Source: Takakia lepidozioides (lineage: Eukaryota > Plantae > Bryophyta). Taken from it: DNA of 64,000 nucleotides. The stretch covers positions 77,624,001 through 77,688,000 of the forward strand of contig CM060731.1 in the NCBI GenBank assembly GCA_030704615.1. The letters run 5' to 3'. Position numbers and translations under genes: made by a program. The notes under the pieces are model-generated. The model was given only the letters and a program-made list of their open reading frames with translations, ran no database searches and was not told where the DNA came from. Shown one piece after another: positions 9,226-58,613 of the stretch; the stretch's first letter is position 1, and each line of letters begins with the position of its first letter.

Positions 9226-9246
9226 GTCCCATGTCTTTCATTTCTT

Positions 9247-28580: not shown

Positions 28581-30140
28581 AGTGAGTATTTCAACAAGCA
28601 TTTCAATCATTTAAATACCTAGGTAGTAAATCCGAAGATCAGTTTTGTAATATCATACATCAATATTTAATTCACACATCAATAAAGTTCTGCCATGGCC
28701 TCTAGGCTCTGTCCCCGACATTATAAATAAATAATTTTTTCTCTTATGCAGAACAAGTTTGACATATAATTCTAATATGTGATATGTGATACGATATTAT
28801 ATTTCAATATAATATCTGTAGGAAATCTTTCAACTTTAGAGTTTTAGGGTGGAGCCATTACGCGACTAGCCGCTTGTTGCTGAAGGAACAATCTAAAAAT
28901 ATTAAGATCTGCAGAAGTTATGTTAATATATCATGGTCTATGAAACCCGAAACGGGTTCCATAGGAAGTTAAGGGTGAAGAAGATATCAAGACTAAAAAT
29001 ATGTTTATTTATTTGTTTGTTTATTTTAAATACATATTTTGTAATTTTTTCTTAAAAACAATGAAGCTAAACACCCAAAACACCACCAAACGCCACCACC
29101 AAAAATTCAAGCTAAACACCAAAAACCATTAAATTTAGGAATGATCTTGGACAGGCCCATTCCAACATTTGTTTGAAGAATTTTTCTTTTCTTTTCTATT
29201 TTCGGTAAGAGACGACGACACACTATCAATTTAATTGTTGAGTTCTGGTGAATGGAATTACGTCGTCTGAAAGTGCCAATGGGCGAAGGCAAGAGCATTG
29301 GAACCATTGCAACCTATATCAAGACATACGCAAAAAATAAAAAATACTGCATGCGAGTATGAGTCCAAATCATAATTATATGTGATGTTGGTAGCATTTT
29401 AGGTTTTTCCTCTTTGCAGGTAGAGCCACATCCTCACCCACCAATGAACTATAGGCCATAGGCAATGTCTCACAGCTCCCGTTGTGTGCAATTTGGGCTG
29501 GTGACACTTGGCTGTATATGACTCATTTGGAAGAATCTAAATATAGCTCCACTACGACGTCATCGGCAGGATTTAAATCTAAATAGATCTCCAGCTGTCT
29601 TGTTTGGACTGATCTCTATATCCAATGTTGGAGTCACCGTATTTTGATCTATTTATAGAGATTATTAATGTTTGGTAGGAGTTCGTACAAATATTTGTCT
29701 ATTTCTTTAAATTCTTTTTAGTCTCAACGTGTTGTGGGAGGATGTATTGTGGTTTTCTTCTAGATCTTCTTTCTTTCTCGTCATTACACATATATGTCTT
29801 GTTATGTTTTCACATGAGGTTTGAGTGATCTAGATCTGCAGTAATTCATGTACCATTTTATGAGTATCATATGGTCTATTTCTCATGTCTGATATCTTCT
29901 ATACCCTTTTACGTCTTCTGACGTTTTTGGCCCCCAACTAGCTCATTGTATGGATCTGCAAACCTTAATATATGCAAGCAGGATACATTTCTCTCTCCAT
30001 CTTCCTTCTGTGAATGAGACTTTCTATTTTTCTGGAGTAGACCCAATAGATCCGTCCATCTTCTTCCATATGTATATCATGTATACATTTTCAAACACAT
30101 TTTGATGTTCAATGTTGATGTTAGGTTGTTCGCAGCTAAT

Positions 30141-32138: not shown

Positions 32139-33169
32139 CAATCAGCATGCGAGTGTTCTTCAACCAACGAGAGACGCCCATTTGCTACTGATTAGAATAT
32201 GTATTCGGCCGCCGATAGAAGTCCTGGTACCGTAATATAAAATCCACGACATGGATAATTGAGAAAACTGATACCCTCAAAATTGATCATGTCATCCCCA
32301 ATACATGTTACACATTCAAAGGCAAGTAGTAAATGACCACTGCAAAATCAAGTACATTTTTTTAGAGATTACAAACTGATTTTTTCGCGATTCAAGATCT
32401 CTAAGTGCAAACAATTTTGTATTGGATCCCTATATGGGTTAGTTTATCTTGTTCACAAGAAAGGAAAATAGTCCATTCTAAAATTTCAACTCATAGTTAA
32501 AACTCAAATGTGGTTGAGCCACTATATTTGTCGCATGAAAAAAAATTGAGGTAACTTGACTCGACTGAATTTTTTGGGTTTAAATAGGATCGGAAGTGGG
32601 TTTTCAATATGAATTGTCATTAAAATATTTGCATTTCTTTCCATTGTATATGATGCTAACCGTTCTTGCACTTCCCACCTTTTTTATGAACATAACTATA
32701 GTCTTGAGCTATATTATGCACGCAAGTATGTGTATCAGGAAATTATTTGAACTTGCAAGCGGTACCAAAGGGTGTACAACTTACATCTTAGTCACGATAA
32801 GTCAACCTCATGATCTTCAGACAATAGTAATTTAGCTATCTTTCTTCTAGAGTTGGTATAAATTGAGCTAACTATGCATAATATTCTTATGGTCCCTATT
32901 CGGTGTTTCCATGTTTTATTGGAGACCATGTGTGTAGATTAGTTATTAAATAATAAGTTCAAGGCTGGAGAGGTCACGCAGAGAAAAGCCCTCCTCCCCC
33001 TTCTTTATATACCTTCTCCAGACGACGGCCCCGCCCTATCAAGAGGCGCGCTCGAGCCTTCCAAATGGCTGGTCCTCGCAACGTGTCCACAACCCTAACA
33101 TGACGCCTAGACGAACACATGTCATCCTTCTGCATCGCTCTACTGCACCTGTTCCTGCCTCCCCATTGG

Positions 33170-35520
33170 TGGTCATGCTTGTTTTTTAAAGGCTTTTGAC
33201 CGTATCAATTGGCCTTTTTTTATTGGGGGCCCTTATTGGGGGCCCCCCTTTTTTACCTCCTGGGTCACTATCCTCATTTCTTCTGCCTCCAGCCATGTAA
33301 GTACTAATGGTCATCTTTCAAGACCTTTCCCCCTCGAAAGGTCCGTCAAGGTTGCCCTCTCTCCTATTTGTTGTTTCTCATTGCAGCTGCCTGTCTTGGC
33401 TACATGTTTGATGCTCATTTGATTCTTGGCTTATCCATCCCTCACGGCCAGCCATCTAATTTCAATATTAACATTTTTTCCTATGCTGATGACACCACTT
33501 TTTTTCTGCGGAATGACCTGATGACTAACATTGTCAATGCAAGCCTTCTCTACTTTAAACTCTTTCTGCAGTGCCTCAGGTTTTAAAGTTAACTGGCGCA
33601 AGTCTAAAGGTCTGCTCTCTCTTCCCTCAGCCTTGCCCCCCCCCCCCCGCACCTTCCTGCTTGGGGCTCTGATTGGGGTCTGTCTTGGCTGGCTCATGGG
33701 GAATCTCACCCTCTACTCGGTCACTTGATGGGTCATGGTTTATCTAGGGAACAACATTTTCCGCCCATTCTTGCTCGCCTTAAGTCTAAGTTATCCTTTT
33801 GGTACTCTTCCAGATTATCCCTTGCCGGTCGTGCTCTTGTTGTTAACCAAATCCTCGAAGCTTCCCTCTGGTTTATTGCGCCGGTTTGGAGCCAGCCTGG
33901 CTCCCCTATCATCAAGAAGATTAAAGCTTTGATTAGAAACTTTTTGTGGGGTGCTGCTGATGCGGGAGTCTCCCTAGTTTCCCAGGTCACAACTCTGCCA
34001 AAAATAAAACTTGGTGGACTGGGAATCTAGACCTCAATTCTCAAATTACAGCTCTCCTTGGTAAGTGGGTGCCCAGGTCTTTTCTTCCTAATGCAGGCCC
34101 ATGGAAGTTTCTTATTATTATCTTGCTGCTGCAACACTAAAGACTGAGCCGCGCTGGAATGTCTCTTTACAGTGGATGACACAAAAGGGTAAGTTCAACT
34201 GTTTGCCAGCAAATGGGTCTGAGACCTGGTGCTCCATATGGGGGGCTTGGGTGAGGCTTTGGGAGTACTTGTATCATCGACCCTCTACCTATTGGGAAGA
34301 GGTAATGCGGCAGCCTCTGTTCGGAAATCTGCAACTCGATAATGAGGTACTGGCTAAATGCTCCCTCCCCTAGGCACTCTGGGAAGCAGCGGGCTTCAAC
34401 TCTGTGGCTTCTATATGTAATAATGGTATTCTTTCTCCCCCCCAACCTTGGTCTTTGCTTGGCCCCCGTCGTTTCTCTCGTTCCTAGCCTTGTTTAACCT
34501 CAATTGTCCATTCTAGGTGGGGCTTGCTGCTCCAAGATGGCAGGGATAAATGGAAGTCTCGGCCATCATGGATAGGATGCATTGGGGGTATTCCTTGTGA
34601 TGTCCTGTTCGTTTCTGATCCCAGGGTCTCGGTGGCCTCTGGCTTGGGTTTCTTGGCTTCGTCATTTGGTGCTCTTTCCCCCATTGCCCTCATGTCAGTC
34701 CATGCTGCATCTCTTTTCCTAGTACGAGTCATGGACTGCTCTTCATGAGGTAAATTGAATCCCCTCCCTCTAGGCTCGGGTTCTCTTGCCCAATGGGGTG
34801 CGATACTTCCCTTTCTTTGGCTGTTCGTCTTACTAGTCTCTCAATTACCTTGGGACCCGGCTGACTGGGCCTAGCTTTATAAGGATAAGCCGGCCCCTTT
34901 CTTCTCTTATTCAACAAAGATAGGGTATAATCTCCTCTTACCCCCCTTCCCCACGGAAGCTAAGATGTGTGGCAAGTGGTCTCATCTCTCTATCCCTAGA
35001 GGGGCTTGGCATGGTATTTGGTCTGATATCTGGAATACTCATAGGGCTGCAAAGCTGAGTGCTTTCTTATGGAGGATGACTCACCGCATTCTCCCTGTGG
35101 CTAGTCATATGCAGGTTCCCCCTTCTGATGTCTACACTTTGTGCCCCTCACTTTTGCCTGAGTATTTGGAACACTGCCTGCTTCATTACATCTTTGCTTG
35201 ACAGGTTTGGGTGCGAATTCGGTCCTTCTTCCTCCCATGGAAGACTCTTAACATAACTGATAACTCTCTTTTGCTTTTTAATATCTCTAATGGGATTCCC
35301 TGGTTGTCATGTCAGCTTTGGCAATGTCTCAGAGCCCTGGGTCTTTGGCACATCTGGAAGTCTAGATGTGCTTGGCTGTATAATGGTACCTCCCCTTGCC
35401 CTCATGCCACTCTAGCACGTATTCATTTTGATCTAATTATTCAGTGTTGCAAATTGTGGGATTTGCTGGTGTTGGCAGTACTCAGATGTTCTGAAGACCA
35501 ACGTGTTGCTCGATTTGATT
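33170..35520 (+). mobile_element. Decayed, 5'-truncated L1/Tx1-type LINE ORF2 (RT + zf-RVT region)
   Basis: KAFDRINW, QGCPLSP, YADDT, SGFKVN..KS, LSLAGRALVVNQIL, GGLGI, FLWRMTHRILP, E.LEHCL; stops and frameshifts throughout. Confidence 0.9.
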
Positions 35521-35530
35521 TTGATTCTTA

Positions 35531-35760
35531 AATTAAGCGACCGCCGTTTGGCGGTCGCTTACTTAATATATATTTTTAAATGAAGCGACTGCCAAATAGC
35601 GGCGGTCGCTTATTTATATTTTGAATCTTGAATTAAGCGACCCCCAATAGGCGGTCGCTTATTTACTATATATATTTTTTAAAGCAGCGACCGCCATGCG
35701 GCGGTCACCTGTTTTTTTATTTTCTTAGAAATCCAGGGACCCGCCGTGTGGCGTTTTGTT
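35531..35760. repeat. Array 1 of the palindrome AAGCGACCGCC-N-GGCGGTCGCTT (~5 units)
   Basis: Seen directly; units are separated by AT-rich spacers. Confidence 0.92.
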
Positions 35761-35969
35761 TTTAATTTTTTAATCATGAAGCGGCGCCTGGCCAGCCACG
35801 TGGCGAGATGAAACAAATGGGATGGGGGGAGGTGGTTTTGAACTCTTGACCTCTCCCATGTGGGTGCGAGTGGCGAGGTGCGACTGACCAGTCGCGCCGC
35901 TCTGACACGTGGCAAGGCGCCACTAGCATATCGTTCCTTTTCAAGCATAATGCCATTTTGGGGGGGGTG

Positions 35970-35990
35970 GGCGCCTATATAAACCATTCC
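35970..35990 (+). promoter_or_regulatory. TATA box of the kinase gene
   Basis: CCTATATAAACC after a G-run and CACGTG boxes, followed by a pyrimidine patch, ~320 bp before the ATG. Confidence 0.55.
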
Positions 35991-36300
35991 CCCCTCCTTT
36001 TCTGATCACTTTTGTCCCTCTCATGGTGCGGTTCCTTGGCATCCTGTAGTCCTTTCGGACTTCGTTGCTTGGCACTGCCAACGGGAGGTGCTAAGGTGAT
36101 TATTTGGGGGGGGGGTTTTTGTCGGTTTTTTATTGGTCAGTCCCACACACTTGTTCACGGTTCAATCATCGTATCATCATTTTGCCGTTTTCGGATCTCC
36201 GACGGTCTGTTTTTTTGCAAAAACTACAAAGGCACCATCCACACGCGTTCATTGCTGTTTTCTGAGGTTTTGAACCCTGTAGTGGGCAAAGGTTTATACA

Positions 36301-37746
36301 ATGTCGGGGGTTGTGAATTCAAGTTCTAGGGCGGGGTCGTCTGGGGGTCGGAGGAAGAGAAAACGTGCCCACGAGCGGGATAGCCAGGTCAACAAGCCCG
36401 ACTACCCGGGACCGGATGCCTTGGATAGGATGAAAGAAGTGGTAGTGGATTATTTCAAGGGTAGGGACAGGCATGGATGGGAAGGGTTTCAGATTTTCCA
36501 GCAAAATATGGAGAGAAAAATGACAAACGCTTTGGCGGGGGCTAAGTGGACGGCGGACAGGGATAAGCCGAAGTTCAATCGGTGGATCCAAAGCAGGGTG
36601 AAAGACGCCACGTGAAATTTGAGGCAGCTAATGAAGACATGGAAGGGTAGAGCAATCGAGGGTCGATTGCCCTCCGTCGAAACTGAGTTAATGCGGCGTG
36701 TTGAGTATTGGGCTTGCTCGGCAAGTCAGAATTCACATCGCCGGACTAGGGTTGTCCCTTGGGAGACGGGGTCATCAGGCGGGGGAGGCACGACTGGTCT
36801 TTATTACCTGAACTCTACTGCAAAGATGGTAGAGATTGGCTCTTACAAAGAAGGAGGGTATGCTAAGGTCCGTCAGTGTAGGATTGTTGGCAATTCTAGA
36901 ATACCGGAGCATTGGGAGCTAGCGGGAAAAAATCCCAAGTCCAAAAATCCAGAAAAGACGTTGAGACAACATAACGACGAGTGTTTGGCAGTGAAGTTCC
37001 AGCATCCAGGTGTTATCTCATATTTTGTTATGAATGCACGTGAGGTAGAGGGTTACACTCGCTGGTGGAATGGGGGGACAATACGCAACATGATGAATCT
37101 TGACAGAAAATGGAGCAACGATTCGGACAACAGGGTGATTTTGGAACAAATGGGAATGAAAGCAGAGTTCCAGGAATGCGATCGCTTGCTTCGTTTCCGG
37201 AAAGTGCGAAGTTAACTTGCATGGGCACTGGTGTACATCATGGATGTTGTCCAGAAGAACGGTGTCCTGCACAACGACTTGTCCCCCGACAACATCTTGT
37301 TGCATTTTCCAGATGGCACCGAGGAGATCAAGATTCAGGTGTGTGATTGGGGCTTAGCCACCCCATTGGGCATAAGCAAAGCCTCACCGTACCAGTTTGA
37401 AAACCAAGACAAGCTGGACCGGGAACTCGAGAAAAGATGGTGGGTGGAAAAAGATATTGCATCGGTTTTCAATGCGAATGCCACCCCCCCCCCCCCCCCC
37501 CCGCCCTACCAGGACATGACGTCGGAGGCCTTTGCCATTGAGAAGATAATGGTCCGAATAAATGGCGGCGCTAATTATGATCAAAGTATCGAGGACCAAT
37601 TTACGGGAGGTTGTTGGCATTCAGTGCTACAAAGGTTATACAACAATAACAAGAATGAGAGAGTTACATTAGCCCATGTAGTACTTCGGTTCATGGGCAA
37701 GCCATTCAACTGGCCTGAGCCGAAAGACGTATATAGGACGGAGTAG
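36301..37746 (+). pseudogene. Atypical protein kinase (~481 codons) with two in-frame premature stops
   Basis: ORFs 36301, 36619 and 37231 share one frame. NLS-like RRKRKR, G-loop EGGYAKV, LAGK, HPGVI, catalytic HNDLSPDNILL, and CDWG in place of DFG. Confidence 0.85.
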
Positions 37747-37812
37747 ACCAGTCTCATAGATATGAGATTTGTGGCGGTACAATGGTTCTTTTATGAAGAC
37801 ATAACTCAATTT

Positions 37813-38380
37813 TGATCGTGCATGTAATAAATAAAGTCCCATTGTAAATACTACATTGCATATGCTCGACCCTGGCACCTGTCATCGCAACATAAATGGT
37901 TTGTGTACTGGCTCACTGTTTATATTTGTAATGTTCCAAGGTTTCGGATAGGGTTATGAGAAAACGATGTATTAGTTCCGTAAGAGTTAGACAACAAACG
38001 TCTCACATCTCATTCAACTGTGCGACACTACCATGAAAGGCATGGATCGGAAAGTAATAGGTGCACATGCGACCTCCGAACGTTTGATACTAGGTCCAGC
38101 GAATGGTCTACTTGAACGTCCGGAGGTCGCATGTACACCTATTACTTTTTGATCCATGTCACTCATGGTAGTGTCGGCATTTGAATGAGATACGGAACGT
38201 TTGTTGTCTAACTCCTATGGAGCCAATATATCATTTTCTCAGTACCCTGTCAGAAACATTGAAACATTCGAAGTTACAAACAGTACCATAATACACGGCC
38301 GGTTTTGTTGAAATGACATCTGTGAGGTTCGAGCGTATGCAATTTTTTATTTAAACGGAATTTTATTACTCGAGGGATCG
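37813..38380. repeat. Long imperfect inverted repeat (hairpin 1, ~250-bp arms)
   Basis: For example GAGTTAGACAACAAACGT pairs with ACGTTTGTTGTCTAACTC, and AAAGTAATAGGTG.ACATGCGACCTCCG with CGGAGGTCGCATGT.CACCTATTACTTT. Confidence 0.92.
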
Positions 38381-38419
38381 GTACTGCTGCTGGAGCGCAA
38401 CTGATGGTGCGAGTTCTCT

Positions 38420-38830
38420 ATTGATTAGAGCTGTCACAACCAATGTCAACAATCATATTTACGGTAAGGTGTTTCATGCTATTGTTGTTTATCTAGTTGA
38501 ATTTTGTAGTACTCTTTTTGCTATTCACATGCCAACGTCATCTGAGACTGTCATGTTCAAACGAACGTATCAGCTACCCCGGCCAGCTTGCAGGCTGCAG
38601 GCCCGGCCCACCATAAATTGAATGAATTGGAGATTTTGTGCAAAGTTCCTGGTTTCATGTCCGTGGTGGCTGATATGGAATTCGGAATATGGCAGTCGCA
38701 GTGGACCTGATGTCGTTGGCATGGGAGTAACAAAACGATTCATAAAGAATTTAGCTACGTGAACATCGGCTGTATGAAACATCTTGCAGTACATATGATT
38801 CTTGAGATTGTTTGTACGGATTATTTGTGT
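38420..38830. repeat. Imperfect inverted repeat (hairpin 2, ~155-bp arms, ~90-nt loop)
   Basis: AATCATAT..AC...AAG.TGTTTCAT and CATGCCAACG.CATC recur reverse-complemented at 38667-38830. Confidence 0.8.
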
Positions 38831-38881
38831 TTGTGCTTTCAAGTGGCGAACATTTCCGCCATGGTGCGGAAGAGGTGCATT

Positions 38882-38971
38882 GGCCACATTAAACGGTTGA
38901 TGTGATACCATTTCACAAATGTATCACATCACATTTGTGAAAATGTATCACATGAACCGTTCCATGTGGCC
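38882..38971. repeat. Near-perfect 90-nt hairpin (hairpin 3)
   Basis: GGCCACAT..AACGGTT.ATGTGATAC..TTTCACAAATGT - loop - ACATTTGTGAAA..GTATCACAT.AACCGTT..ATGTGGCC. Confidence 0.92.
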
Positions 38972-39108
38972 TACAGGAGTCTTCGATGGATGCGAGATCA
39001 ATGTGGCCTACGAGATCTGCTTCCACCAACAAACATGTGATCATTTCAGAAGCGCTTGAACTTTGAAACGACGATGGGCAAGGTTCTTCGTCAAGATGTT
39101 CAACATAC

Positions 39109-39415
39109 TGAGGTCTTCTGTAATGTCTCTTGCTTCGTAATGAGGTGCTTCTCTAACTCTTATTTTTCCAATGTTGATATCTTCCATCTGGAACATATCC
39201 ACACATGCATATATAAACACTTAAAAAACCAAATGACCATCAAAACTGGAAGTTGGGTATGAGGCTTATAAAAGTGGAGATGGTCATTTGCTTATTTAAG
39301 GATTTCTGCACACATTTGTGGATCTGTTCCAGGTGGAGAACATCAACATATTGGATAAAGTGAACATGGAGAAGCACCGCATTACGAGGCAGGAGACACT
39401 ACAAAAAGAGCTTCA
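39109..39415. repeat. Imperfect inverted repeat (hairpin 4, ~130-bp arms)
   Basis: TGTCTC.TGC.TCGTAATG.GGTGCTTCTC pairs with GAGAAGCACC.CATTACGA.GCA.GAGACA; CAAATGACCATC pairs with GATGGTCATTTG. Confidence 0.9.
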
Positions 39416-39429
39416 AAGGGCATACCATG

Positions 39430-41850
39430 TAACAGGTCCCAGTATAATCGAAGACGAAACCCCATTCATTCAATGGGCGATTGAATGGTTGCCCATCCAA
39501 ATGATTTTTGTTTGTTTTCAATCTTTGCCACTATGTTCAACATACCATGTATCAGGTCCTGGACTAATATGAGATCAATCGAAATTCATTCGATGGCTCA
39601 ATGGATGAATGGCCATCGAAATGATTTTCGTTCGCTTTGAGACTTGGCCACTATGTTCAATGTGCCATGTAAGAGGCCCCTGAGTAATATGAGATCAATC
39701 GAAATTCGTTCAATGGGCCAACGGATGGTTGCCCATCCAAATGATTTTCGTTCGCTTTGAAACTTGGCCAGTGTGTTCAATGTACCCTCTGATACGTCCC
39801 AGTGTAATATGAGATCATTAAAAAATTCATTCAATTGTCCAATGAGGCGTTTACTTGTCATCTGGTTTTTGTTCAATGCGAAAAAGAAATCATGCAATGC
39901 GTGCACGACTATTGCACCCATTGAACGGATGTGGTTGAAGTCCCTCTTTTGCCCCCATGTGCTGGAACATGTGTGGAGACACATTAGACGAATAAATCAT
40001 TTGTCTCCCCATCGACGCGTTCACCCCTCAAGCCATTCCACAATTTAATTGAATTTAAACTCATTTTAAGCCAAAAATAGGTTTGCACTGCCTTTCATTG
40101 GGGGTTTCTGGCACGTATCGATTTTGTTTTTTGCTCAATTTCGTTCTGCGGCTTCAAGCATCCCACCGCTACTCCCCCGCCAAAATTTGGACCAATCAAA
40201 AATGCCCCCCAAAAAAAGTGTTTTTTCACTCACTATTGCAGAACTCTCTATGAAGAAGGCATGAAGTTGTACACAAAAGTTTGGAGTGCAAAACAGGGAA
40301 GAAACTGTGGTTTTGGGTCCAAATGAATTATGTTCGCTCCCAAATTTGGCACGCACGTTGCATATGGCTACATTATACGCCCCATTAAAAAACGGAATGA
40401 AAAAAAAATCATGAGCATACGAAACACAGTCCAACAGGTCCCAAAACAATAGTAGGTCCAACGGAATATATTCAACGGGTGAACGGATGGTTGCCCATCC
40501 AAATCATTTTTGTTTGCTTCCAAACTTTGCCAGTACATTCGAGACACCCTTTCATAGGTCCCGGACTAATATGAGATCAATCGAAATTCATTCGATGGCT
40601 CAACGGATGGTTGGCCATCGAAATGATTTTGGTTCGCTTTGAGACTTGGCCACTATGTTCAATGTGCCATGTAAGAGGCCCCAAAGTAATATGAGATCAA
40701 TCGAAATTCGTTCAATGGGCCAACGGATGGTTGCCCATCCAAATGATTTTCGTTCGCTTTGAAACTTGGCCAGTGTGTTCAATGTACCCTCTGATACGTC
40801 CCAGTGTAATACGAGATCAATCGAATTCGTTCGATTGTCCAATGAGGCGTTCACTTGTCATCTGGTTTTTGTTCAATGTGAAAAAAAAAAAATCTTGCAA
40901 TGTATACACGGCTATTGCACCCATTAAACGGGGTTGAAGCCCCTCTTTTGCCCCTATGTGCTTGAACATGTGTGCGACACATGTGCGGAGACACATTAGA
41001 CGAATAAATCATTTGCCTCCCCATCGACGCGTTCACTCCTCAAGCCATTCCACAATTTAATTGAATTTAAATTCATTTTAAGCCAATAAATAGGTTTGCA
41101 TTGCCTTTCATTGGGGGTTTCTGGCACGTATCGATTTTGTTTTTGGCTCAATTTCATTCTGCGGCTTCAAGCATCCCACTGCTACTCCCCCGCCAAAATT
41201 TGGATCAATAAAAAATGCCCCAAAAAAAAAGTGTTTTCTTCGCTCACTATTGCAAAACTCTCTATGAATAGTGCATGAAGTTGAACACAAATCAAGTTTG
41301 GAGTGCAAAATAGGGAAGAAACTGTGGTTTTGGGTCCAAATGAATTATGTTTGCTCCCAAATTTGGCATGCACGTTGCATATGGCTACATTACACGCCCC
41401 ATTAAAAAACAGAATGAAAAAAAAATCATGTGCACGCGAAACACAGTCCAACGGGTCCCAAAGCAATAGCAGATCCAATGGAATACATTCAACGGGTGAA
41501 CGGATGGTTGCCCATCCAAATCATTTTTGTTTGCTTCCAAACTTTGTCAGTACGTTTGACACACCCTCTCACAGGTCCCGGACTAATATGAGAACAATCG
41601 AAATTCATTCGATGGCTCAACGGATGGTTGACCATCGAAATGATTTTGGTTCGCTTTGAGACTTGGCCACTATGTTCAATGTGCCATGTAAAAGGCCCAG
41701 AGTAATATGAGATCAATCGAAATTCGTTCAATAGGCCAATGGATGGTTGCCCATCCAAATGATTTTCGTTTGCTTTGAGACTTGGCTAGTATGTTCAATA
41801 TACCCTTTGATACGTCCCAGTGTAATATGAGATTAATCGAAATTATTTTG
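39430..41850. repeat. Hierarchical tandem repeat: ~120-bp subunits nested in a ~1.0-kb unit (~2.3 copies)
   Basis: ATGAGATCAATCGAAATTC at ~39569/39689/39809, 40571/40691/40810 and 41588/41706/41826. Unique spacer 39850-40470 is repeated at 40850-41490. Confidence 0.95.
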
Positions 41851-42308
41851 TGCTTTGAGAATTTTGTGGGTATGTTCGTAGAAAGATCATAGATTTTGCG
41901 AAATAATTATGAAATACGCAGGGACCAGGCGAAATTTGTTTGGAAGACGACCGTTCGTAACTCGTTATAACTTATTGGTTAACATCAATTTTCCTTGTTC
42001 TCCAGCTTTCGGAGTTCATTGCAAATACCCACATACACGTCATGACCAAATATGACACCATTGTAAATTTGTTTACAGGGTGAACTAATTCTTCCCCATC
42101 ACATGAGTGTAAATATGAAGAAAACGCTGCTCATGCAATTGAAATTGGCAGGTGCCGCACATGTGCATTGTGTATTAACAAAATTGGTGATATACAAAAT
42201 TGGCAGTATACAAAATTGGCGGAATGCCATCACTGTGTTTTCCAACAATATTCAAGGTACAACAAAAATGCACATTGTATATGTACTACGCTGCCAGTCA
42301 TTAAAAGC

Positions 42309-44647
42309 CTAGTCGTCACTGTCCGAAGACAAGGAATTTGATGTTGTGGCCTGATTTGCACTGCCAATTGCCAGAGCTTGCGACCGTGATCTCGTGGTCA
42401 ATGAGGGGCCCAATGGCATGTGATCAATTCTGGCCTGCATCCGCCTACTTCGCGGCGACAGTTGACTTTCTTCTTCACTCTCACGACGTGGCGGAGGTGG
42501 ATCGAGAACAAGTGTTCGGGCTGCATGCAAATCGGCAACGAGGCCGTCCATATCCGGCAATAGAGCCCCCGAAACACGATGATAACGGTCTGTCCATAGT
42601 CGCCTCCATTTCTCTACAACTGCTTTGATCGTACTTTTGAAACTTTCCAACTGCCTCTCGCGGGCCCTGTCCCTAATCATTGTGTCGTTTCGACGATAAG
42701 CCGCCTTGTACGCCTCATTCATTCGGCGTTGACATATTATAGCATCTTCCAGTTCGGACAACAATAAATGTCTCCCAATTGGTTGTCAGTCATACAATCC
42801 GTTCTCCTCCGGCACCCATGGAACCTGTGGGAGCCGGATAAACCTGGACCTTCTTTGACTCCAATGCCATCCCAGATTGTGGCAAAACTGCTCTCTCCCC
42901 CACGAATCTCAATGCCTTCCGCACGTATGGTTATCTCCCAGTCAGATGTGACCCAGAAATACTGGAGATCTTTGATGTATGCCGGGTTTCCGGCATGTAT
43001 GCCATGCATATCTCTGTCTGCATCCCATACCAAGTTCTTGCCCCAATGCACACAATTCAGAAATGTGAATGGTAACCCATCCAATGGGAGGTTGTGTCGA
43101 TTGTATTCAAAACCTATGGGCATCCGTTCCTCCAAGCCCACCAGCTCATAGAAACGGCGATGGATTGGTGTACGACATTCTGGGCAAGTGCTCATCCGCA
43201 AGGCTTGCGGAATAAGACATGTGAGATGAAACATATGTCCACATAATCCAAGTACATGACATCCCTTTGGGCCGTATGGATTCCTACACATCGAACAAAC
43301 TGTGTCATCTGATATCCATGACGACAAAACGCCTCGTGGTATCTCCTCCCTCTGGGCCGGTTTGATGTGCCTGATCATCCTTGTTGTGGTGTCCTACTCT
43401 TCCTCTATCTCCAATTCCCAGTTTATGCTTCTGTTCGATCCCGAAATTTTGTGCTCATATCGATCGAACATAGAATCCACATCTGCCCAATTGGTAGACC
43501 CGACGAACACGCTTGATGCGATGCGAAGATTGTTATACCTTTGCATGTTGACATAAATGCTATCCACGCTACGGTTCGACATGCGTGTGACACGTTGCAA
43601 GCTTGACAGTGCCCGCTCTATCCGTGCTTCTCTGGAGGCCAAATGGGTCGCCCATTGTACCCAATTCTCCCAATCGCCATTCAATAGGACCCATGCCCGA
43701 ATCTCCAGCGTTTTGGACAAGCGCCATGCAGTTGCCATGACAATGTCCCGCTCCTTTGTAACGCAGTCGACATCTAATATCGAGTTCATCTCGGTTTGAA
43801 TGGTGACCCTCGAGCATTCCCCGGTTTCCAGTACCGGTTCTTTTCCTTTCCTCCTTCACTCATCCGCAATTTGCTGTTCCTCAACCATGGTTTCATCGGC
43901 CACAGGGTCAAGGACGTCCGTATTTTCGTGAATGATGAGGTCAATACTGCGATCGGGCATCGCAAACTCCGCGTCCATGTCCACGACGTTTGTTCGATCT
44001 TCATTGTGGACAACAATGCCTTCATTGTTTGGAGGCATGTCTTGCAATCTAGCTTCCAACTCGGCTATGCGCAGTGTTTGTCAGTCTAGTCGGTCCTGCA
44101 GGGTCCTGATTCGCTAGTCTCTTTCCGCCAGTTGTTCCTCTAACATTGCAGCTGGTTGTATTCCGAACGTGTCCGCGATGTACTCCAAATCGTATAGCAA
44201 CCTTGCGTTCCTCCTACTAGCAGTTTGCCAATTCACTGGACGCAAGAGTATGACCTCTACGTACAACATGGCTGCCAATGTGTACGGGATTTGGCCCTTT
44301 AAGAGAGGTTGACCCCACAATGTGCAATGCACCTCATTCGCTCTATGCTGGAAATGCAAGTTCGTGCAAGACCTTGACTCTGCGTAATTGTTTCGGGTTG
44401 GCACGTCATGCCTATCCAAAGGCCACAATCGATTGATGTGGTACCATTTCACGAATTTTTTGCATCTTGCCATCGGCCACCTAAACTCTTCCGGAACATC
44501 CTCCCAGCCCTCTTTTGCTAGTATGCTAGGGTCACCATATACTTTCCAATTCAAGTCTTGCCTTGCCTATTTGATTTTCTTAGGGGGCGGTCCATGTTCA
44601 TTGGGGTCATCTCTTCCATGACGGTCATTGTCCTGGCCCTCTGCCAT
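42309..44647 (-). pseudogene. RING-H2 domain protein (~780 codons); four in-frame stops and one frameshift near 42900
   Basis: ATG at 44647 (MAEGQDNDRHG...PPPKKIK). ORFs 44114-44554, 43856-44059, 43394-43789 and 42737-43378 share one frame. RING-H2 CSMC...CGHMFHLTC...CPEC. Confidence 0.82.
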
Positions 44648-44939
44648 TCTGCAACAAATCGGAGCAACACTAAACGAGGTTTACTATTGTAGAATAAAAT
44701 GATCATGGAAGCCAGATGAGGGCATATGGGAGCATTCTGCAACGACCTCACAGAAATCGCGGCAAAAAATACCCCCCACCCAACCAATGGCCTCCTTCTC
44801 CACGTGACTACATGTCGTGGAATAATGAAATGTCACGCACACATAAGTTGTGTGGAGAAGAAGTGAGGGGAGAATGAGCCTCCCTTGGCTTATATGCAAC
44901 CCCCCCATTCCTCGGGCCACGTGCAGGGCTAACCTTCTA

Positions 44940-44977
44940 GAAGCGACCGCCAACTTGGCGGTCGCTCCATTTTTCGG

Positions 44978-45026
<49 letters not shown>

Positions 45027-46470
45027 GACCGCCAGAACTGGCGGTTGCTCCACTTTCCGAAAATAAAATAAGTAAGCAACCGCCAACATAGGCGGTCGCT
45101 ACATTTACAGAGACATTAAAAATTGAAGCGACTGCCAGTAATGGCGGTCGCTTCATTTTCAAAACAATTAAAATAAAAGCGACCGCCAGTCACGGCGGTC
45201 GCTCTATTTCCAACAAATTTTTAATAAAAGCGACCACCAGTAGTGGCCGTCGCTGGATTTACCAAAAAATAAAACAATTGCGGCGACCGCCTGTAATGGC
45301 GGTCGCTCCATTTGTTTGTCGAGGTCGCTCCATTTCCAACCAAATTTAAATAAAAGCGACTGCCACTAATGGCGGTCGCTGCAATTACAAAAAACAACAA
45401 TAGCGGCGACCGCCCCTAATGGCGGTCGCTCGATTTTCCTCCAAAAAACAAAAAAGCGACCGCCAGTAACGACAATCGCTTCATTTCCAAAATAATTAAA
45501 ATAGAAGCGACCGCCAGTAATGGCGGTCGCTTCATTTCCAAAATAATTAAAAAAAAAACGACTGCCAGTAATGGCGGTCGCTTTATTTCCAAAATAAATA
45601 AAATAAAAGCGACCGCCATGTATAAACCCCCCCCCCCCCCCCCCCTTCCTCGCTCCACGCGCAGGACAGACCTCGTAGAAGCGACCACCACCTTCGCGGT
45701 CGTTCCATTTAAAAAAAAACTGACCGCCAGTAATGGCGGTCGCCCCATTTCCAAAAATAAAAAAATTTAAGCGACCCCCATTACTGGCGGTCGCTGCATT
45801 TAAAAAAATAACCATTACAGCGACCGCCAGAAATGGCGGTCGCTGCATTTTGTAAAAACAAAAATTGCCAGTAATGGAAGTGAGGGGAGAATGACTGGGA
45901 GCTTATACCCCCCCCCCCCCCCCCCCCCCCCCAAATCATTCCTCGCTCCACGCGCAGCGCATCCATTTCGCAAAAAAAAAAACAAAAACGATGGCGGTCG
46001 CTGCATTTATAAAAACAAAAAACTTCAAGTGATCGCCTGTAATGGAAGTGAGGGGAGAATGAGTCCGAGCTTATATGCCCCCCTTCCCCCCCCCCGCCTC
46101 ACTCCTCGCACCATGCACAGGGCACACCTCGTAGAAGCGACCGCCAAGGCACCTCAGCTTCCCCGCACAGAGGACGTATTGTACACGAACACCATCAGCA
46201 ATTTTCGTGCTACTGGTCTTCGTCCTTGGTGGTCGCTCCATTTAAAAATCCCAAAAAAACGACTGCAAAATATGGCGGTCGATCCATTTTCTAAAATTAA
46301 AAAACAACCGACCGTCACTATTGGCGGTCGCTGGATTTTCAGAAAACATAGAAATGAAATCGACCACCAGTAATTTTACGAAGAAACAAAAGACGATCGC
46401 TATTACATCGCGTTCACTGTATTTACAAAGAATAAAAAACAAATGCGACCGCTAGTGATGCCGGTCGCTG
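44940..46470. repeat. Array 2 of the AAGCGACCGCC/GGCGGTCGCTT palindrome (>20 units) with embedded repeated promoter-like cassettes
   Basis: Seen directly in the sequence. Confidence 0.95.
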
Positions 46471-46739
46471 CATTAAAATAAAAATGAATGCAGAGTTGGA
46501 AGCATGACACAATTGTTCTTCATTCCACAAGCAAATCACCGAACACAAACATGAGCAAGTGACGGTGCCTTTGACCGACATTTTGGCTGGTATACATATG
46601 AACAACATCTTTTATTTTCCAACACATACACAACAGCAATACAAATACTCATAGTGACAATGATCACACTGATATTACTTCACTATAGAAATATAAACAT
46701 GTCTACTAAAATGTGCTGATGCATTCCTACAGCTGTTTT

Positions 46740-49700
46740 GCTTCAATTCCTTGTACTGCTTCGATGGCGAGACGAAGAAGATCATAATCCTAATGCTCCG
46801 ATGGATTGAAAATCCGCGTCACTCTCGACTTCACTACCATTGTCATGATCAGTGCTGGAATCGTCTTCCATATCCGACCTCATATGTCCAGGCCTTTGAA
46901 TCTGCAAGCGACCTCGAACCACATTTAGTTCTCTCTAAGGTCGACTCCCATTCCAATCTTGAATACCATCCACGGTATCTGGCCTGTTTGTGGGCCGATC
47001 GTCTACAAAAGGTTGGACTGTTCTCTGTCGTTTATGGACTTGGGACGCAATCGAAGGTGGTCTCGAAGGAGGTACCGAAGGGGGGTCTGCCCGTGATGGA
47101 CCGACATTAGATGGTCCGGTAATCTGCTGCGCAACACGTCGATTAAGGTGGAATTGTAGTGGCAGGTTGTCATCATCTGAGGCTTCAACTTTCGCCCGGT
47201 CCAATGCAGCACAATGATGTGTGCGTGTAGAAGATAGATCAACCCTGTTGCTCTTTAATGTTCGCTGTGTTGATGGGAAGCTGGATCGGTTTTGGCATTG
47301 TGGTGGAGCTGGTCGTATCGGTGAGACATGATCCCGTCCCGTCGACTGTACAATGGGTTTGATACCATCGTTTGTATGAACAAGGTTGCGTACATCGCTC
47401 GGTCCTGGAAGTTCATCACCCCTAAGCTCCATTGGGGCACTACTGGTGGCTTCAGCGTGTAGTGGGGGGCGAGGGTCTACCCCAACTTCATTTTGAGGAC
47501 CATGTTCTGGGGATGACACAATTGCAGCTTCACTTTTATCTGCAATACGCACTTCTTCAAGAAGGTCATCAAAGGTCGGCTGGATATAAGCATCCTCCTC
47601 TGTGAATGTAAACGGGTCATACGCATTTTTGGGAGCATCATCGGATCCATCTTCACTATCGGAGGCAGATAATTCCCTCTGGGATGATTCTTTCTGAGGC
47701 TCAATATCGTCACTCATCGAATCTACCTCAGAAGCAGAGTCTTCTGAATGCAAATTCCTCTCATACCATGCTACAGCATCATCCGCTGCCCTCTCACGTA
47801 GCAGTCGACAATTGGTATACACATATACCAATTTGTCAACCTTCGTGGGATTCAACCTGTTGCGAATTTTGTTGTGAACAAATGATTAATTGCTCCAATT
47901 GCGTTCGCAAGATGAGACAGAGCACATTTGAGCAAGAATACGCTTCGCAATGGGAGCCAATGTTCTTGCTCCAGCTCCAATCAGATCCCACCATTCATGT
48001 GGTAATATATTGAGTTCTTTTGGATCTCGCATGTCCTCAAAAGGGCCGCGGCGATCTAAGAAGCATTGGTACTCGGATATAGCTCTCTCTGCATGGTTCG
48101 GCGGAGCCAGTCGCATGACACTCGCACGAGGTCGGCCTTGGCATCAGCGTCATCTCGGAGCATGGTATTGTTGAGCAAAAATGGATTGAACAAAGCCCCC
48201 GCATAATGCAAGTCCATTCGAACCATCGAACGACGGTCGTAAAATGCATCCTCAGCACTGTCCGCAAATTTAGGTTCCAAGGAGAATGTAGGATGACTCA
48301 AGGATTGGACGTGCTTCTCAAGATTTTGCATTAGTAACCATGCCTTGCCCATTACTGGTTGTTTTCCATCAAACTCCCGCAAGACGATTAATACCGGCTC
48401 TACCATATAAACAAAGTTTTCACATTTCTTCCAGAAATCATTGCTGCGAATGTTATTTCGAACTTTTCGACTTTTGCCCAATGACTTGGCTTTTCTGGAG
48501 TCCCGCAATATCCGTGTGTACGCATCCCATTGAGGATCGATGATGGTTTGCTCCAGACTTCTTTTCACCGTCACTAACCGATCCACCATCAAGAAATTAG
48601 TGGCAAAACGAGTTTCGCCTGGATTGTGGAGGCTGTATTTGGGTTCGTGCCTCCTATATATTGCCAAAGGGATGTGGTGTGTGCGGATGAACGACACAAC
48701 AGTCTTCGCTCGCTTGACAAGTTGTTTTACCCACTGTTCTTTTCCCCAATCTTCCAAAATGAGGTCAAGGATATGAGCAGCACAACCTTGATAGTACATA
48801 TGGGGATAACGTGCCAACAACATGTCTGCAGTGTTTCTCATGTTAGCGGCATTATCTATGCATATTTGCACGATTCTATCACTTCCGACCTGTTCGATGA
48901 AGTCCGTCAATAGTTGACATTGATAACGTCCATCTTTTTTCTCGCCGCTAGTGTCGACCGATCCCAAGAATTGTTTCCCAACTGGACATACGAGCATGAC
49001 ATTGAACAACGGTCTATTTGTAACAGAACTCCAATCATCGGCACATATAGTGCTTCCATATTTTCTGATGCACTCCCCGTTCTATCGTTGACCTTTTGGG
49101 TAAGCTCGGTCACGACATCTTCTAGCAATCTTGTGCGGAGATTGTGATAAGTCGAAGGCACGTACGTGGATCTGGACTCCGAGGTTGCTCTAACGGCAGA
49201 AACAAATGCCGGAAGCCTTGCCACATTAAATGGTATGTTGACCTCAAAGAAAAACTGCGCCCATTTTTTATCCAACTGTCTTTTCGCAGACAAGTTAAGA
49301 CCTTCCTGCATGGATTGCTGCCGTAATCTTCTACTCCGTTGAAGTGTAGGGGTACAAAGAGGTGATGAAACAGGTGTTACTCCGGCACAACCCACTTGTC
49401 CAAGGACACCCGAAGCCTCACAAGAGTCGTCCTGGATACTAATCGGGGCATCATGATGGGAAGATGTAGTGTTCTGCTCATAAGTCATGTCCAGATCCAA
49501 AGACATTGGAATATTGCCTCCACACTGGGCAAAGTGGCTTTTTACCCGCATAGATGCTTTAGAGCATAAACCCACCCCAGCGCTCTTCACACCTTTATAG
49601 CCGAGGTGAGCGAGCAACCGATCCTTACGATAAGAAAGCTTTAATCCACGTGGGTTGCACTCAACACTACCAGTGGCACTGACAGTGTTCGGGATTGCCG

Positions 49701-49760
49701 TATACCAAGGACTCCATTCCTCCCTCATCTTCACCCAATATCCACTCCCCTGGGCCCTAG
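46740..49760 (-). pseudogene. hAT-superfamily transposase (BED-like, DUF659, hATC dimerisation) with a long acidic/low-complexity tail; frameshifted
   Basis: NIPFNVAR, TICADDWS, FLGSVDTS, IDNAANM, CAAHILDLILED, PGETRFAT, WWDLIG, SSCERNWS, RNRLNP.KVDKLVYV. Confidence 0.92.
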
Positions 49761-50159
49761 CGATGTAAGCAACAAAAAACAGTCACCTATAAATGAACGT
49801 GTTGTGAATGTAGAGTGCAATGCAATAGCCCAACACTATTACACCTGTCAGCAACCCAAGTGGGTCGATGTGGGTTGTAGTGTTGAGCTTATATACAATC
49901 TGCTGAAATGGCTTTGGTGGAAGCCACAATGGCAAAAGGTGCGCACCCTCCTCTTGGGCTACACTTTCTTTCAATGGAAAAGAACATCGAAAGCAACCTT
50001 AAGTGTTTGCGCCAAAAGAAGTGAGGAGTTTGGTGACCCTCCTCCCTTATATATGATCCAAGAAGGATAAAAGTGAAATGAAAGTGAAATGAATAAATGA
50101 CGAACCAATAGCGCCCACCCGAAAAAGGTTGTACAACCATATTTGTTATAATTTTGAAA

Positions 50160-51080
50160 TTAAGCGACCGCTAATACTACGGTCGCTATTTCTATTTTTT
50201 ATGAAAAACAAGCAACCGCCACTATTGCGGTCGCTTTTATTTCCTCTTTTTTTGTGCAATATTGCAGTCACTTCTATTTTGTATATTTTTAAATTTAAGC
50301 GACCGCCTGTATGGCGGTCGCTATTATTTTTTATTTCAAAATATAATGCGACTGCCGGTATGGCGGTCGCTTCATTTTTAAAAATATTTAAAATAAAGCG
50401 ACCGCCAATATGGTGGTCGCTTTTATTTTTATTTTTATTTTTTAAAACGCAACCGCCAGTAAGGCGGTCGTTTTTAATCTTTATATTTTCAAGTTTAAGC
50501 GACCTCCAGGTTGGCGGTCGCTTAAACTTAATATATACTTTAAAATTGACGCGACAGCCGGTTTGGTGGTCACAAATATTGTACTGTTTTAAAACAAGCG
50601 ACCACCTGTGTGGCAGTCGCTTTTATTTTCATATGTCGCTTGTTTTATTTATACAATTCTAAATTTGTTAAACTTGTCGTTTGTTTTTCTATATATATAA
50701 TTAAGCGACCGCCCAATGGCGGTCACTATTTTTTCTAATATATTTTTGAAATTATCCGACCGCCATATGGCGGTCGCTTGTTCTGTACATATTTACAAAA
50801 TTGTGCGACCGCCAATACGGCAGTCGCTTGTTTTCTTTTTTAAATTAGGCGACCGTCAATGCGACTGCCAGTCTTGTTTTTTTTTTAAAATAAATTGAAG
50901 CGACCGCCAAGATAGCGTTCGCTATATATATTTTTTAATTCAAAAATAAAACGACCACCAATTCGACCGCCAATCTGGCTTCTTAAAAAAATAAATTGAA
51001 GCGACCGCCAATTATGACGGTCGCTATTTCTTTTTTAATTTCGAAAACAAAGCGACCGCCATAATTGGCGGTTGCGTTCA
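50160..51080. repeat. Array 3 of the AAGCGACCGCC/GGCGGTCGCTT palindrome (~15 units)
   Basis: Seen directly. Lies upstream of the minus-strand TATATAAG (~50047-50055) of the hAT gene. Confidence 0.95.
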
Positions 51081-52419
51081 TTTTGTTAATTTTCAAAATG
51101 TATTTGCCACTGCCAACGTGTCGGCGACGTGGCTGCTTAAGTGGCAGTATTTTACCTGGTACTATTTTTACCAGAATATTCCCCGAACCTGACGTGACGG
51201 AGGTCCCATCAGCGTCAGGTCTGACGTGACCTGACGATGACGGACGGACGTGACGCTGATAACCGGGTCGAAAGCTAAGAAGCACATTGATGGCCCTTAT
51301 CTTATTACTGACATTTTACCTAGTAGATAGTATGTTCTTCTTACACAGTATGCCTCTACTCCTCATTTGGCTAGTTCAATTCATGTATCTCTCTTAGTTC
51401 CATGCACTCTAACGTTTGACTTGACATGTTTGAATGTGGAAAATAGACAGGTGATTTACACCCCTACTAGGGCTGCCCTCTCCCGCAGTCCATCCTGTTT
51501 CGTGTACCTTTGCATCCTTTTTGTGTACCTTTGCATCAGCCAATATTCTCATGAGTATTTGCCTTGAGCTACCAGAGCATCTATTCATGTACAGACACGA
51601 GTTCATCGTGTAGTCACATTATGTTCAAGCACATTAGTGTTTGTTTTAGGTTTTAGAGATTTCAAGGTTTGCTTCATTTCTATTATTTTTCACCGTTACA
51701 TACCTTAGTCTCCCTACTTTTTTACAATTATTTATTTAACTATCATCAATGCCTCATTCACTTGGATGATTTATTCATCCATTTTTTATTCATCCATAAT
51801 AACGTCGACATTAGTGTCAAGGTATGGATTCTAGAGACTTAGTCTGGTGGAGTTATCAACCCATATAGCAGATCCGTACTCCAAGGCAGGTCTAATAACG
51901 CGGCAAAGTAAGGTTTTCTTGACCTCAGAGTTAATGGATTGTTGTTTAAATACAAGCTAAAGTCTCATCACTTGACCTTCACTCTGTCCCACATCACATT
52001 TCTTCTTCATTTATTTTTATTTTTTTTGGGTCTTCATTCACATATTCACCTACTTTATTGAATGACTCTATATTAGGATATCCAGTAAAGGCTGTTATTT
52101 TTTCTTCTATCTATCTCTATCCGTCGAGACTAAAGAACGTTGACATTCATATTGACGTTCTATTCTTTATATCATTTCTTATTTTTCTTGGTCCTCATCG
52201 ACACATCCACATGACATATTCTAATTCTCTTAATATTTCTTCACCGCGGGGAATCACAATATCGCCTTTTTTGTGTCTTTGCAAAGGTCATGGCAGCATG
52301 AACGACTACATTGATTACATGAAAACACGAAGGTTTGTGGTTGATGACATCATCGGAGGAGCAGACGTGCGCGATCGCGTGTGCTTCATTCAATGCAAAT
52401 CGTCACCTACAGAAGCCCT

Positions 52420-57167: not shown

Positions 57168-58006
57168 TGTTAGAGGGCTGCTTGGGACTTAGACGCTTTT
57201 ACGGGTTCTGTGGGGTACCCTTAATTTTTGCGCAGATTGAGACCAACAGGAGCCTTAGGGGTGGCAGCAGCAGGCTTTAGGGGGGTTACACAGCCCGACA
57301 CAGCTTCACACAGCCCGACACAGCTCCACACAGCCTGACACAGCTTCGCACAGCCAGTCACAGCTCGGCACAACTTGACACAGCCTGTCACAGTACATGG
57401 GGAACATTTATCATTGACAGGGAACGACTGTGAGGGAACGACATCTGCAGAGGGAATGTGTTACTTCAGGGGTGACGGTTAGTTAGTTAGTTAGGTGGTT
57501 AGAACAGCTTGTGGGTAGATTAGGAGAGCGGCAACGGGAAAGGGATCACTTCTGGAAGAGGGCAAGAAACGTAACAGAGAGCGGAAAACAGTGAAGAGGA
57601 GATGATGACTTGAATGAGGCTTAGATCATGCAAGCTGTAGAATTATACAGTAGGATAGAATAGAGACACCATGGCATAGGCATGATACATGATTAATCTT
57701 AATCCGATACTGAATCGATACAAACATACTGTGTAGAGAGACACGAGAGAAGCTGTGGAATGAATGCATGATTAACTGGAACTTAGTAGATACTGAAGCA
57801 ATCTGATGCTTCAGTATACACGGTAAGGTAAATTGATAACATGAAGGCAAGAATGAATACAAATAGGAAGCACAACCATGATTCACTAGCTGCAGGTCAT
57901 GACTGATTGTTCTGAGCGGGCTGAGTGCTTAGAGATATCCAACTCTTCTATCTTGGAGTTTCCACCTCGGATAGCGAAGGGATGGGTGAGTAAAAGCCGC
58001 TCAACA
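57168..58006 (+). repeat. 5' LTR of Gypsy copy B (839 bp)
   Basis: TG...CA ends, adjacent PBS, and homology to 9834-10945. Confidence 0.9.
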
Positions 58007-58593: not shown

Positions 58594-58613
58594 AGAAATG
58601 AAAGACATGGGAC

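Follow-up and report, generated by a model that had tools for sequence, protein, structure and literature searches.

A probable left-truncated copy of a multi-gene hAT-superfamily transposon with kinase and RING genes in Takakia lepidozioides

A 64,000-nucleotide stretch of the Takakia lepidozioides genome (GenBank assembly GCA_030704615.1, contig CM060731.1, positions 77,624,001 to 77,688,000, forward strand; hereafter the window, with coordinates counted from its first base) harbors, at 35535-51267, what is probably (at roughly 0.78) a degenerate copy, truncated on the left, of a hAT-superfamily transposon (DUF659 clade) with several genes, namely a kinase gene and a RING gene in addition to its transposase. 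Relatives define a lineage that comprises an intronless transposase, a divergent eukaryotic-type kinase and a RING protein, each organized as a cassette of motif array, core promoter and open reading frame (ORF); an additional array forms the subterminal region beside the terminus, and the order, orientation and motif of the cassettes vary by family. The window copy itself is non-functional: its genes are broken, its arrays have undergone CpG-transition decay, and a fragment of a long interspersed nuclear element (LINE) stands in place of its left end. Degenerate and missing one end, this copy is not a working system. The element and its left flank consist of the following features.

33368-35531, plus strand: LINE fragment, a flank outside the element (decayed C-terminal part of a non-long-terminal-repeat reverse transcriptase)
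35535-35760: array 1, four dyads AAGCGACCGCC-N4(7)-GGCGGTCGCTT with a ~50-bp period, then degenerate copies
35761-36300, plus strand: predicted kinase promoter and leader (CACGTG boxes, G-run, TATA TATATAAA at 35976-35983, CTCACTT-like start region)
36301-37746, plus strand: kinase-like pseudogene, a single 481-codon frame interrupted by stops at 36613 and 37213
37830-38367, 38436-38815, 38882-38971 and 39116-39406: four long, unrelated hairpins
39464-41844: nested tandem repeat, about three 1-kb units (~91% identical), each with about three 120-bp units
44650-42740, minus strand: RING-H2 pseudogene, one frame of ~637 codons with five internal stops (44569, 44116, 44083, 43858, 43396)
44651-44940, minus strand: predicted RING promoter and leader (CACGTG, G-run, TATA CATATAAG at 44889-44897, CTCATTCTCCCCTCACTTC)
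44941-46470: array 2, 17 dyads (6-nt spacer), with A48 and C25 runs breaking up the array
49734-46938, minus strand: hAT transposase pseudogene (N-terminal finger, DUF659 core, hAT dimerisation domain, long C-terminal tail)
49735-50161, minus strand: predicted hAT promoter and leader (CCAAT-like box, TATA CATATATAAG at 50047-50056, CTCCTCACTTC)
50162-51075: array 3, 15 dyads with a spacer of mostly 5 nt, the subterminal array of the right end
51100-51267, minus strand: right subterminal region and terminus (terminus at 51239-51267; the reverse complement from 51267 is CCCGGTTATCAGCGTCACGTCCGTCCGTC)

One motif links the three cassettes. With at most one mismatch, the 11-mer AAGCGACCGCC has 53 matches in the window, compared with an expectation of 0.25 from shuffles, and all of them are confined to 35535-35695, 44941-46333 and 50162-51060. 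A search for dyads (a half-site, a gap of 2-8 nt and an inverted half-site) identified 36 full dyads with spacers of 4-6 nt, distributed as 4, 17 and 15 over arrays 1, 2 and 3 at a period of ~50 bp. Each array has its own dominant spacer (4 nt in array 1, 6 nt in array 2, 5 nt in array 3) and has therefore grown by local duplication. Downstream of each array lie a TATA box and one intronless gene, encoding the kinase, the RING protein and the DUF659/hAT transposase, respectively. The arrays also have in common a core-promoter module, consisting of a G-run, TATATAA and, ~30 bp further on, CTCACTT, and the gene starts 240-320 bp beyond it in each cassette; array 2 contains additional partial copies of the promoter junction at 45860-45965 and 46030-46140, and a likely third near 45620-45680, recognized by eye only. 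A preliminary description of the window, made from its letters alone, had reported a palindromic array with a TATA-like box before each of the three genes and a motif found nowhere else in the window, both of which are borne out by these counts. Internal mismatches of the array half-sites are mostly CpG transitions (GCGACTGCC, GCAACCGCC, GCGACCACC), indicating past methylation, though the CpG content of the arrays is still high (observed/expected 1.4-2.1, versus 0.58 for the whole window).

The broken genes were searched piecewise, none being joined or repaired, with in-piece stops entered as X in local tblastn. The transposase matches Pfam DUF659 at 48059-49009 (minus strand, E 5.3e-27) and Dimer_Tnp_hAT (PF05699) at 47889-48059 (minus strand, 22.3 bits against a cut-off of 21.4); its dimerisation domain is interrupted by an in-frame stop at 47886-47888, its frame switches twice (near 49000 and near 48058), and the second Cys of its N-terminal C-x2-C...H...C finger, a zinc finger conserved at the transposase N-terminus, is substituted. 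Matches of the accessory genes fall under the Pfam cut-offs, with Pkinase at E 9e-6 for the kinase-like ORF, which contains the motifs EGGYAKVR, GYTRWWNGG, LHNDLSPDNILLHFP and VCDWGLA, and both zf-RING_2 and zf-RING_5 at E ~1e-4 for the RING ORF. The kinase, RING and hAT genes named in the preliminary description are thus present and intronless, but none is intact: all three contain internal stops, and the hAT gene also changes frame.

Evidence that the three genes belong together comes from relatives in the ENA assembly ERZ25073694, in JGI metagenome contigs and in the moss Ceratodon purpureus, most of the loci deriving from metagenome assemblies. Homologues of the kinase, RING and transposase genes are found together in these sources, at 25-50% amino acid identity. 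A search with a piece of the window transposase returned only relatives of 46-51% identity; the transposases of the relatives are 42-54% identical and contain both DUF659 and Dimer_Tnp_hAT. In one ENA locus, L001, all three homologues lie within 11 kb, and L002, with 88-91% nucleotide identity to it, represents the same family as a further copy. A left boundary, CAGGGTTGTCAA, also written (C/T)AGGGTTGTCAA, is common to both. An inverted terminus at the right end is seen in L002 alone, whose flanks, CCCCTCCT and ACCCTCCT, match at 7 of 8 bases when compared as an 8-bp target-site duplication of the hAT type. L002 is without a 5-kb RING segment present in L001, as would be a deletion derivative. 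Inside the RING region of L001, positions 5725-5736 form a perfect inverted copy of the element terminus TTGACAACCCTG, and downstream of the RING gene 7503-8173 forms a hairpin whose 303-nt arms are 92% complementary; a nested insertion or an internal rearrangement is possible.

A profile scan with the transposase alignment yielded 80 more loci. Among the hAT-anchored loci of the metagenome and ENA set (L001-L085), kinase and/or RING homologues occur in 16 of the 29 that are at least 15 kb long and in none of the 21 shorter than 5 kb, as expected for neighbouring genes. Two-gene elements with hAT and RING genes were also identified (L011, L013, L089), and the layout varies further in other Ceratodon and metagenome families, where the hAT and RING genes converge, the kinase precedes the hAT gene, or one strand carries all three. 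Gene content is thus conserved, whereas gene order and orientation vary. Co-occurrence in relatives, which the preliminary description had put forward as its check, therefore favors the linkage of the three modules but not a fixed order, which differs by family.

Ceratodon purpureus provides a named moss with high-copy, apparently intact copies. Its kinase cluster (at least 90% identity) comprises 95 members, which are spread over many chromosomes, U and V among them; hAT content in this genome is enriched on the U and V sex chromosomes (PMC8245031). In all seven fetched copies the hAT gene is followed by the kinase gene on one strand, and three of the seven, whose locus extends far enough, also have an upstream RING homologue close to the locus start. 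These copies are 96-97% identical and all stop at ATGACAACCATG, beyond which the flanks are unique and unrelated; intact ORFs encode a hAT protein of 1148 amino acids and a kinase of 522 amino acids. Dispersed families with shared boundaries are thus represented, among the relatives only, by L001/L002 and by the Ceratodon copies. Rather than occurring independently, the genes are linked in many loci and, in relatives, lie within shared boundaries that have hAT-type termini. The Ceratodon element (L086-L092) also contains a 143-bp satellite between the RING and transposase genes, which ranges from 2 copies to more than 3.4 kb among copies 96-97% identical to one another (for example, 2989-3282 in L087 and 1-3425 in L086). 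The protein KAG0595207.1 and ~94 other Ceratodon proteins of 175 amino acids, labeled 'hypothetical' or 'protein kinase domain-containing', are fragments of the 522-amino-acid transposon kinase ORF; that pieces of this kinase are annotated as ordinary short host proteins is of practical relevance.

Arrays before the genes recur in the relatives with other motifs. The window motif GCGACCGCC is absent from the first 85 loci fetched, except for one chance match. Many metagenome loci instead have clusters of GGTGACCAAA before each gene, as in L061, where they lie at 621-952 before the kinase, at 3767-4021 before the RING gene and at 8265-8484 before the transposase; 114 of 188 matches to this motif fall no more than 1.5 kb upstream of estimated start codons, a region making up 17.6% of the sequence. 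In Ceratodon, GC(A/T)CGCGCCCG arrays stand before the hAT gene, before the kinase gene and beside the terminus; L001 has CGTCGTCGCCCGA arrays before its RING and transposase genes, and CGTCCGCTCC arrays mark the two outer ends of L011, a two-gene element. An array of one motif before each gene is a general trait of the lineage, the motif differing by family. Arrays that are both subterminal and gene-proximal are not independent miniature inverted-repeat transposable elements (MITEs). The proposal that the genes share one operator accordingly survives as one array per gene, in the window and in relatives, but each family uses a different motif.

The right end of the window copy is taken as 51267 on the strength of sequence likeness to the termini of relatives. 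The terminus CCCGGTTATCAGCGTCACGTCCGTCCGTC is homologous to CAGGGTTGTCAACGTGTCCGTCCGTCCG in L001, to CATGGTTGTCAT...CCGTCCGT in Ceratodon (also given as CATGGTTGTCAT...CCGTCCGTTAGTCCGT) and to TAGGGTTGTCA in L093/L094 (also given as TAGGGTTGTCATGG); the L037/L049 terminus, CCCGGTTGTCAA, has TTTCGACCCGGTTGTCA in common with that of the window and no likeness to it past ~20 bp. No left partner for 51239-51267 was found. Array 1 adjoins the LINE fragment at the expected site of the left terminus; translations of this fragment contain YADD, FLW and zinc-knuckle motifs, together with a weak zf-RVT match at 34965-35198 (E 1e-4, under the Pfam cut-off), in agreement with the LINE remnant that had been described at the left end. 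Two look-alike sites were rejected as left termini. The first, CCCTGGTTGTCA at 35299, lies within the LINE reading frame, and the following 235 bp are unlike the right subterminal region (score 18, versus a shuffle mean of 16.4); the second, a TTAGGGTTGTGG-like sequence at 33085-33100, is not significantly similar to the element. Since array 1 runs directly into the LINE fragment and the look-alike sites fail, the copy is truncated on the left, and with the left end missing no target-site duplication can be read in the window. It had been stated that no terminal inverted repeat or target-site duplication pair surrounds the hAT gene; a left partner was indeed not found, but a hAT-type terminus exists on the right. 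The TTAGGGTTGTGG-like site itself, a hAT-like terminus on the reverse strand, lies ~90 bp from a CTCCTCCCCCTTCTTTATATA stretch at 32985-33010 that is similar to the promoter of the element; the pair, non-significant by BLAST, could be a relic of another copy or a chance match.

In the center of the segment, the kinase and RING genes converge over the four hairpins and the nested tandem repeat, just as had been described. The hairpins have no border target-site duplications, no further copies in the window and no relatives in the fetched loci, and their interpretation as MITEs was rejected on these grounds; they are not present in the Ceratodon and L011 elements and are probably lineage-specific additions. 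Rfam and tRNA scans of the whole window returned zero matches, and the small-RNA function once ascribed to the unit finds no footing here. Nor did we find evidence for an anti-silencing or toxin/antidote system, which stays in the realm of speculation.

The kinase family is marked by the signature EGGYxKVR, GYTLWWNGGS, ILHNDLSPxNILLHFP and VCDWG, and retains the catalytic Asp, the Asn and the metal-binding Asp. Its best sequence match in PDB has an E value of 1e-5, and in its structural model a helical N-terminal domain is followed by a generic kinase fold, with no specific kinase group matched; the family is highly repeated in the organism of ERZ25073694. The RING protein of the lineage (~750 amino acids) starts with an N-terminal domain, followed by a long coiled coil, the RING-H2 domain and, last, a C-terminal domain. 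In its model the N-terminal domain is confident and the RING-H2 domain weakly resembles the RINGs of E3 ligases (Foldseek E 0.14 or worse), while the fold search gave no match for the N- and C-terminal domains. This family is rare, with 296 matching representatives among 1.84 billion.

Comparison of L011 with L013 gives a ratio of nonsynonymous to synonymous substitution rates (dN/dS) of 0.42 (RING gene) and 0.34 (transposase), with dN at 0.078 and 0.022, respectively. The corresponding dS values differ threefold (0.184 versus 0.063), a gap that could reflect exchange of cassettes between lineages. Identity to relatives is 25-40% for the accessory proteins and 45-50% for the transposase core. 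Pack-type transduplication would entail a segment close to a host parent gene and usually fragmentary; neither gene has a close cellular relative, and both belong to families of their own, with full-length, intact ORFs in relatives. From these sequence comparisons, the kinase and RING genes are long-standing genes of the element and not recent captures.

The hAT gene had been regarded as a mere component of a larger cargo element. It is instead the transposase of the unit, which makes the unit a hAT-superfamily transposon with accessory genes; membership in hAT follows from the transposase in the window, and from ends and duplication in the relatives only. What had been described as a mobile unit of at least 16 kb is accordingly upheld in that its three genes are linked as one unit, but the window holds a degenerate hAT copy that has lost its left end.

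As to how intact copies might work, the dyad arrays would be binding sites of a dimeric DNA-binding protein encoded by the element, most likely the transposase, acting through its N-terminal zinc finger. Because such sites stand at the ends and before every promoter, one protein could both mark the ends of the element and jointly activate all of its genes. The description of transposases as intrinsic sequence-specific activators of their cognate copies fits this proposal (bioRxiv 10.64898/2026.08.24.746577). Duplication of a terminal array-plus-promoter module may have supplied each added gene with its own promoter, and in intact copies the kinase and RING protein would serve as accessory factors acting on host or element proteins. 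A wider scheme, which we advance as possible and tentative, would have a bryophyte-wide hAT lineage that acquired a signalling toolkit (kinase and RING-type E3 ligase) and is assembled from exchangeable array-promoter-ORF cassettes, in which a rapidly co-evolving, element-encoded binder activates or de-silences the whole gene set of cognate copies only and the enzymes modify host silencing, chromatin or cell-cycle proteins so that a window for transposition opens.

Several observations weigh against the reading of the segment as one such transposon, or against parts of it. The order seen in the window (hAT and RING on the same strand, kinase convergent) occurs in no fetched relative, and the window kinase cassette could come from a second, adjacent element. 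The window family is represented by the window copy alone, multi-copy status being established in relatives only, and the terminus at 51267 starts with CCCGG, not YAGGG. For the arrays, the p value of 2e-39 for upstream enrichment of GGTGACCAAA is overstated, the loci being partly related, and the promoter activity of the array-linked TATA modules is predicted from their sequence. The array-binding protein is likewise a prediction, and since the terminal 30 bp are conserved between families and the arrays are not, these may have another reader than the conserved transposase core.

This last point leads to a rather unlikely variant in which the transposon is the same but its arrays are read by a fast-evolving accessory regulator encoded by the element, for example an N-terminal domain, either that of the RING protein or that of the kinase. 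This regulator would activate or de-silence cognate copies in the manner of the VANC proteins of VANDAL elements, with the kinase and E3 acting on host silencing or chromatin factors. Arrays are wholly different between families, whereas the terminal YNNGGTTRTCA (followed in some families by GTCCGT repeats) is conserved, and divergence is faster in the accessory proteins than in the transposase core, both in identity and in dN; with variable arrays, 12-30 constant terminal bp and faster accessory proteins, an accessory protein may be the reader of the arrays. A confidently modeled RING N-terminal domain with no known fold match would suit this role, and VANC targets are tandem repeats that vary between related transposable elements (PMC5735166). 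However, no DNA-binding domain is recognized in the kinase or RING protein, the Pfam scans, in which no VANC sequence was compared, turned up no VANC-like protein, and the window arrays show the CpG-transition decay that fits past methylation.

Two adjacent elements in place of one, namely a hAT and RING element ending at 51267, its other end lost in the hairpin and repeat center, beside a separate fragment of array 1 and kinase, seem distinctly unlikely. Two-gene hAT and RING elements do exist (L011, L013, L089), nested transposable elements abound in the region, the central region has no homologue in relatives, and the gene order of the window is not met elsewhere; yet one 11-mer, otherwise absent from the 85 loci bar one chance match, is present in all three arrays, no terminus-like sequence occurs in 37746-42740, and the kinase of L001 and of the Ceratodon family adjoins a shared hAT-type terminus on its element side. 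Very improbable is an origin of the kinase and RING genes as host genes or fragments captured by a hAT element (Pack-type), or as a host cluster with a shared regulatory repeat. Kinase and RING domains are common in hosts, and there is a lectin receptor kinase gene at a distance of 4 kb, but its architecture is unrelated; the two element genes are intronless, multi-copy, under purifying selection and without a close cellular relative, and have been kept with the transposase across families at 25-50% amino acid identity.

The three-gene element has partial functional likeness to MuDR, En/Spm and VANDAL and is a member of none. Like plant hAT elements of the Ac/Ds type, the lineage has a hAT core (DUF659), a C-terminal dimerisation domain, short subterminal repeats and short YAGGG-type termini, with a probable 8-bp duplication in one relative; unlike them, this lineage adds kinase and RING genes, all genes are intronless, and arrays of up to 1.5 kb precede every gene. 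Classical hAT elements encode a single protein, and we know of none described with accessory genes. In MuDR, mudrA and mudrB are driven from the terminal inverted repeats, and similarly L011 and L089 have more than one gene, arranged convergently, each behind a terminal repeat region. The transposase of these elements, however, is of the hAT and not the Mutator-like (MULE) type, arrays of short dyads take the place of long terminal inverted repeats, and the accessory genes encode enzymes. In En/Spm, 12-bp subterminal motifs are bound by the element-encoded TNPA. Short, partly inverted-dyad motifs in subterminal regions overlapping the promoter are a point of likeness, in contrast to the lack of a CACTA transposase or TNPA homologue and to the presence of arrays internally as well, one per gene. 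TnpA is reportedly transposase-derived and a transcriptional regulator (bioRxiv 10.64898/2026.08.24.746577).

With VANDAL21/VANC of Arabidopsis the lineage has in common family-specific short tandem motifs in non-coding parts of a multi-gene DNA transposon; the VANDAL21/VANC motifs differ sharply between related families (PMC5735166). It differs in having a hAT rather than a MULE (MURA-type) transposase and a kinase and RING protein as accessory gene products, and Pfam scans of the three gene bodies, to which VANC sequences were not compared, returned only kinase, RING, DUF659 and hAT-dimerisation families. The VANC-like concept raised in the preliminary description is thus apt for a possible mode of action, through family-specific arrays in non-coding parts, but not for family membership. 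Its further statement that no plant element of such layout is described agrees with our search of the full-text literature, in which no account of a hAT element bearing a kinase gene and a RING gene was found, Repbase being outside its coverage and absence unproven; the Ceratodon genome paper reports only the hAT enrichment on U and V. To our knowledge, hAT elements are treated as single-gene cut-and-paste transposons, and a lineage that repeatedly links its transposase to a kinase and a RING protein would stand apart from them; these two enzymes would then count as accessory proteins of a plant DNA transposon, their likely targets being host or element proteins. An array per gene, with motifs varying by family, offers a second natural system, beside VANDAL/VANC and En/Spm, in which recognition and co-regulation of a transposon's own copies could be studied.

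The surroundings of the element are rich in other repeats. Two copies of a Ty3/gypsy long terminal repeat retrotransposon encoding gag, protease, reverse transcriptase, RNase H and integrase lie at 1028-10178 (minus strand) and 57657-62692 (plus strand); oppositely oriented and ~92% identical over 4.8 kb, they flank the whole central 47 kb. Dense direct and inverted repeats occupy 17153-26975 (units of ~370 bp and others, 76-95% identity) and are unrelated to the element. The sole ordinary host gene near the element appears to be that of the L-type lectin receptor kinase, an intact, intronless ORF of 678 codons at 30102-32138 (plus strand), whose best full-length relatives, in Sphagnum and Diphasiastrum, are 48-50% identical.

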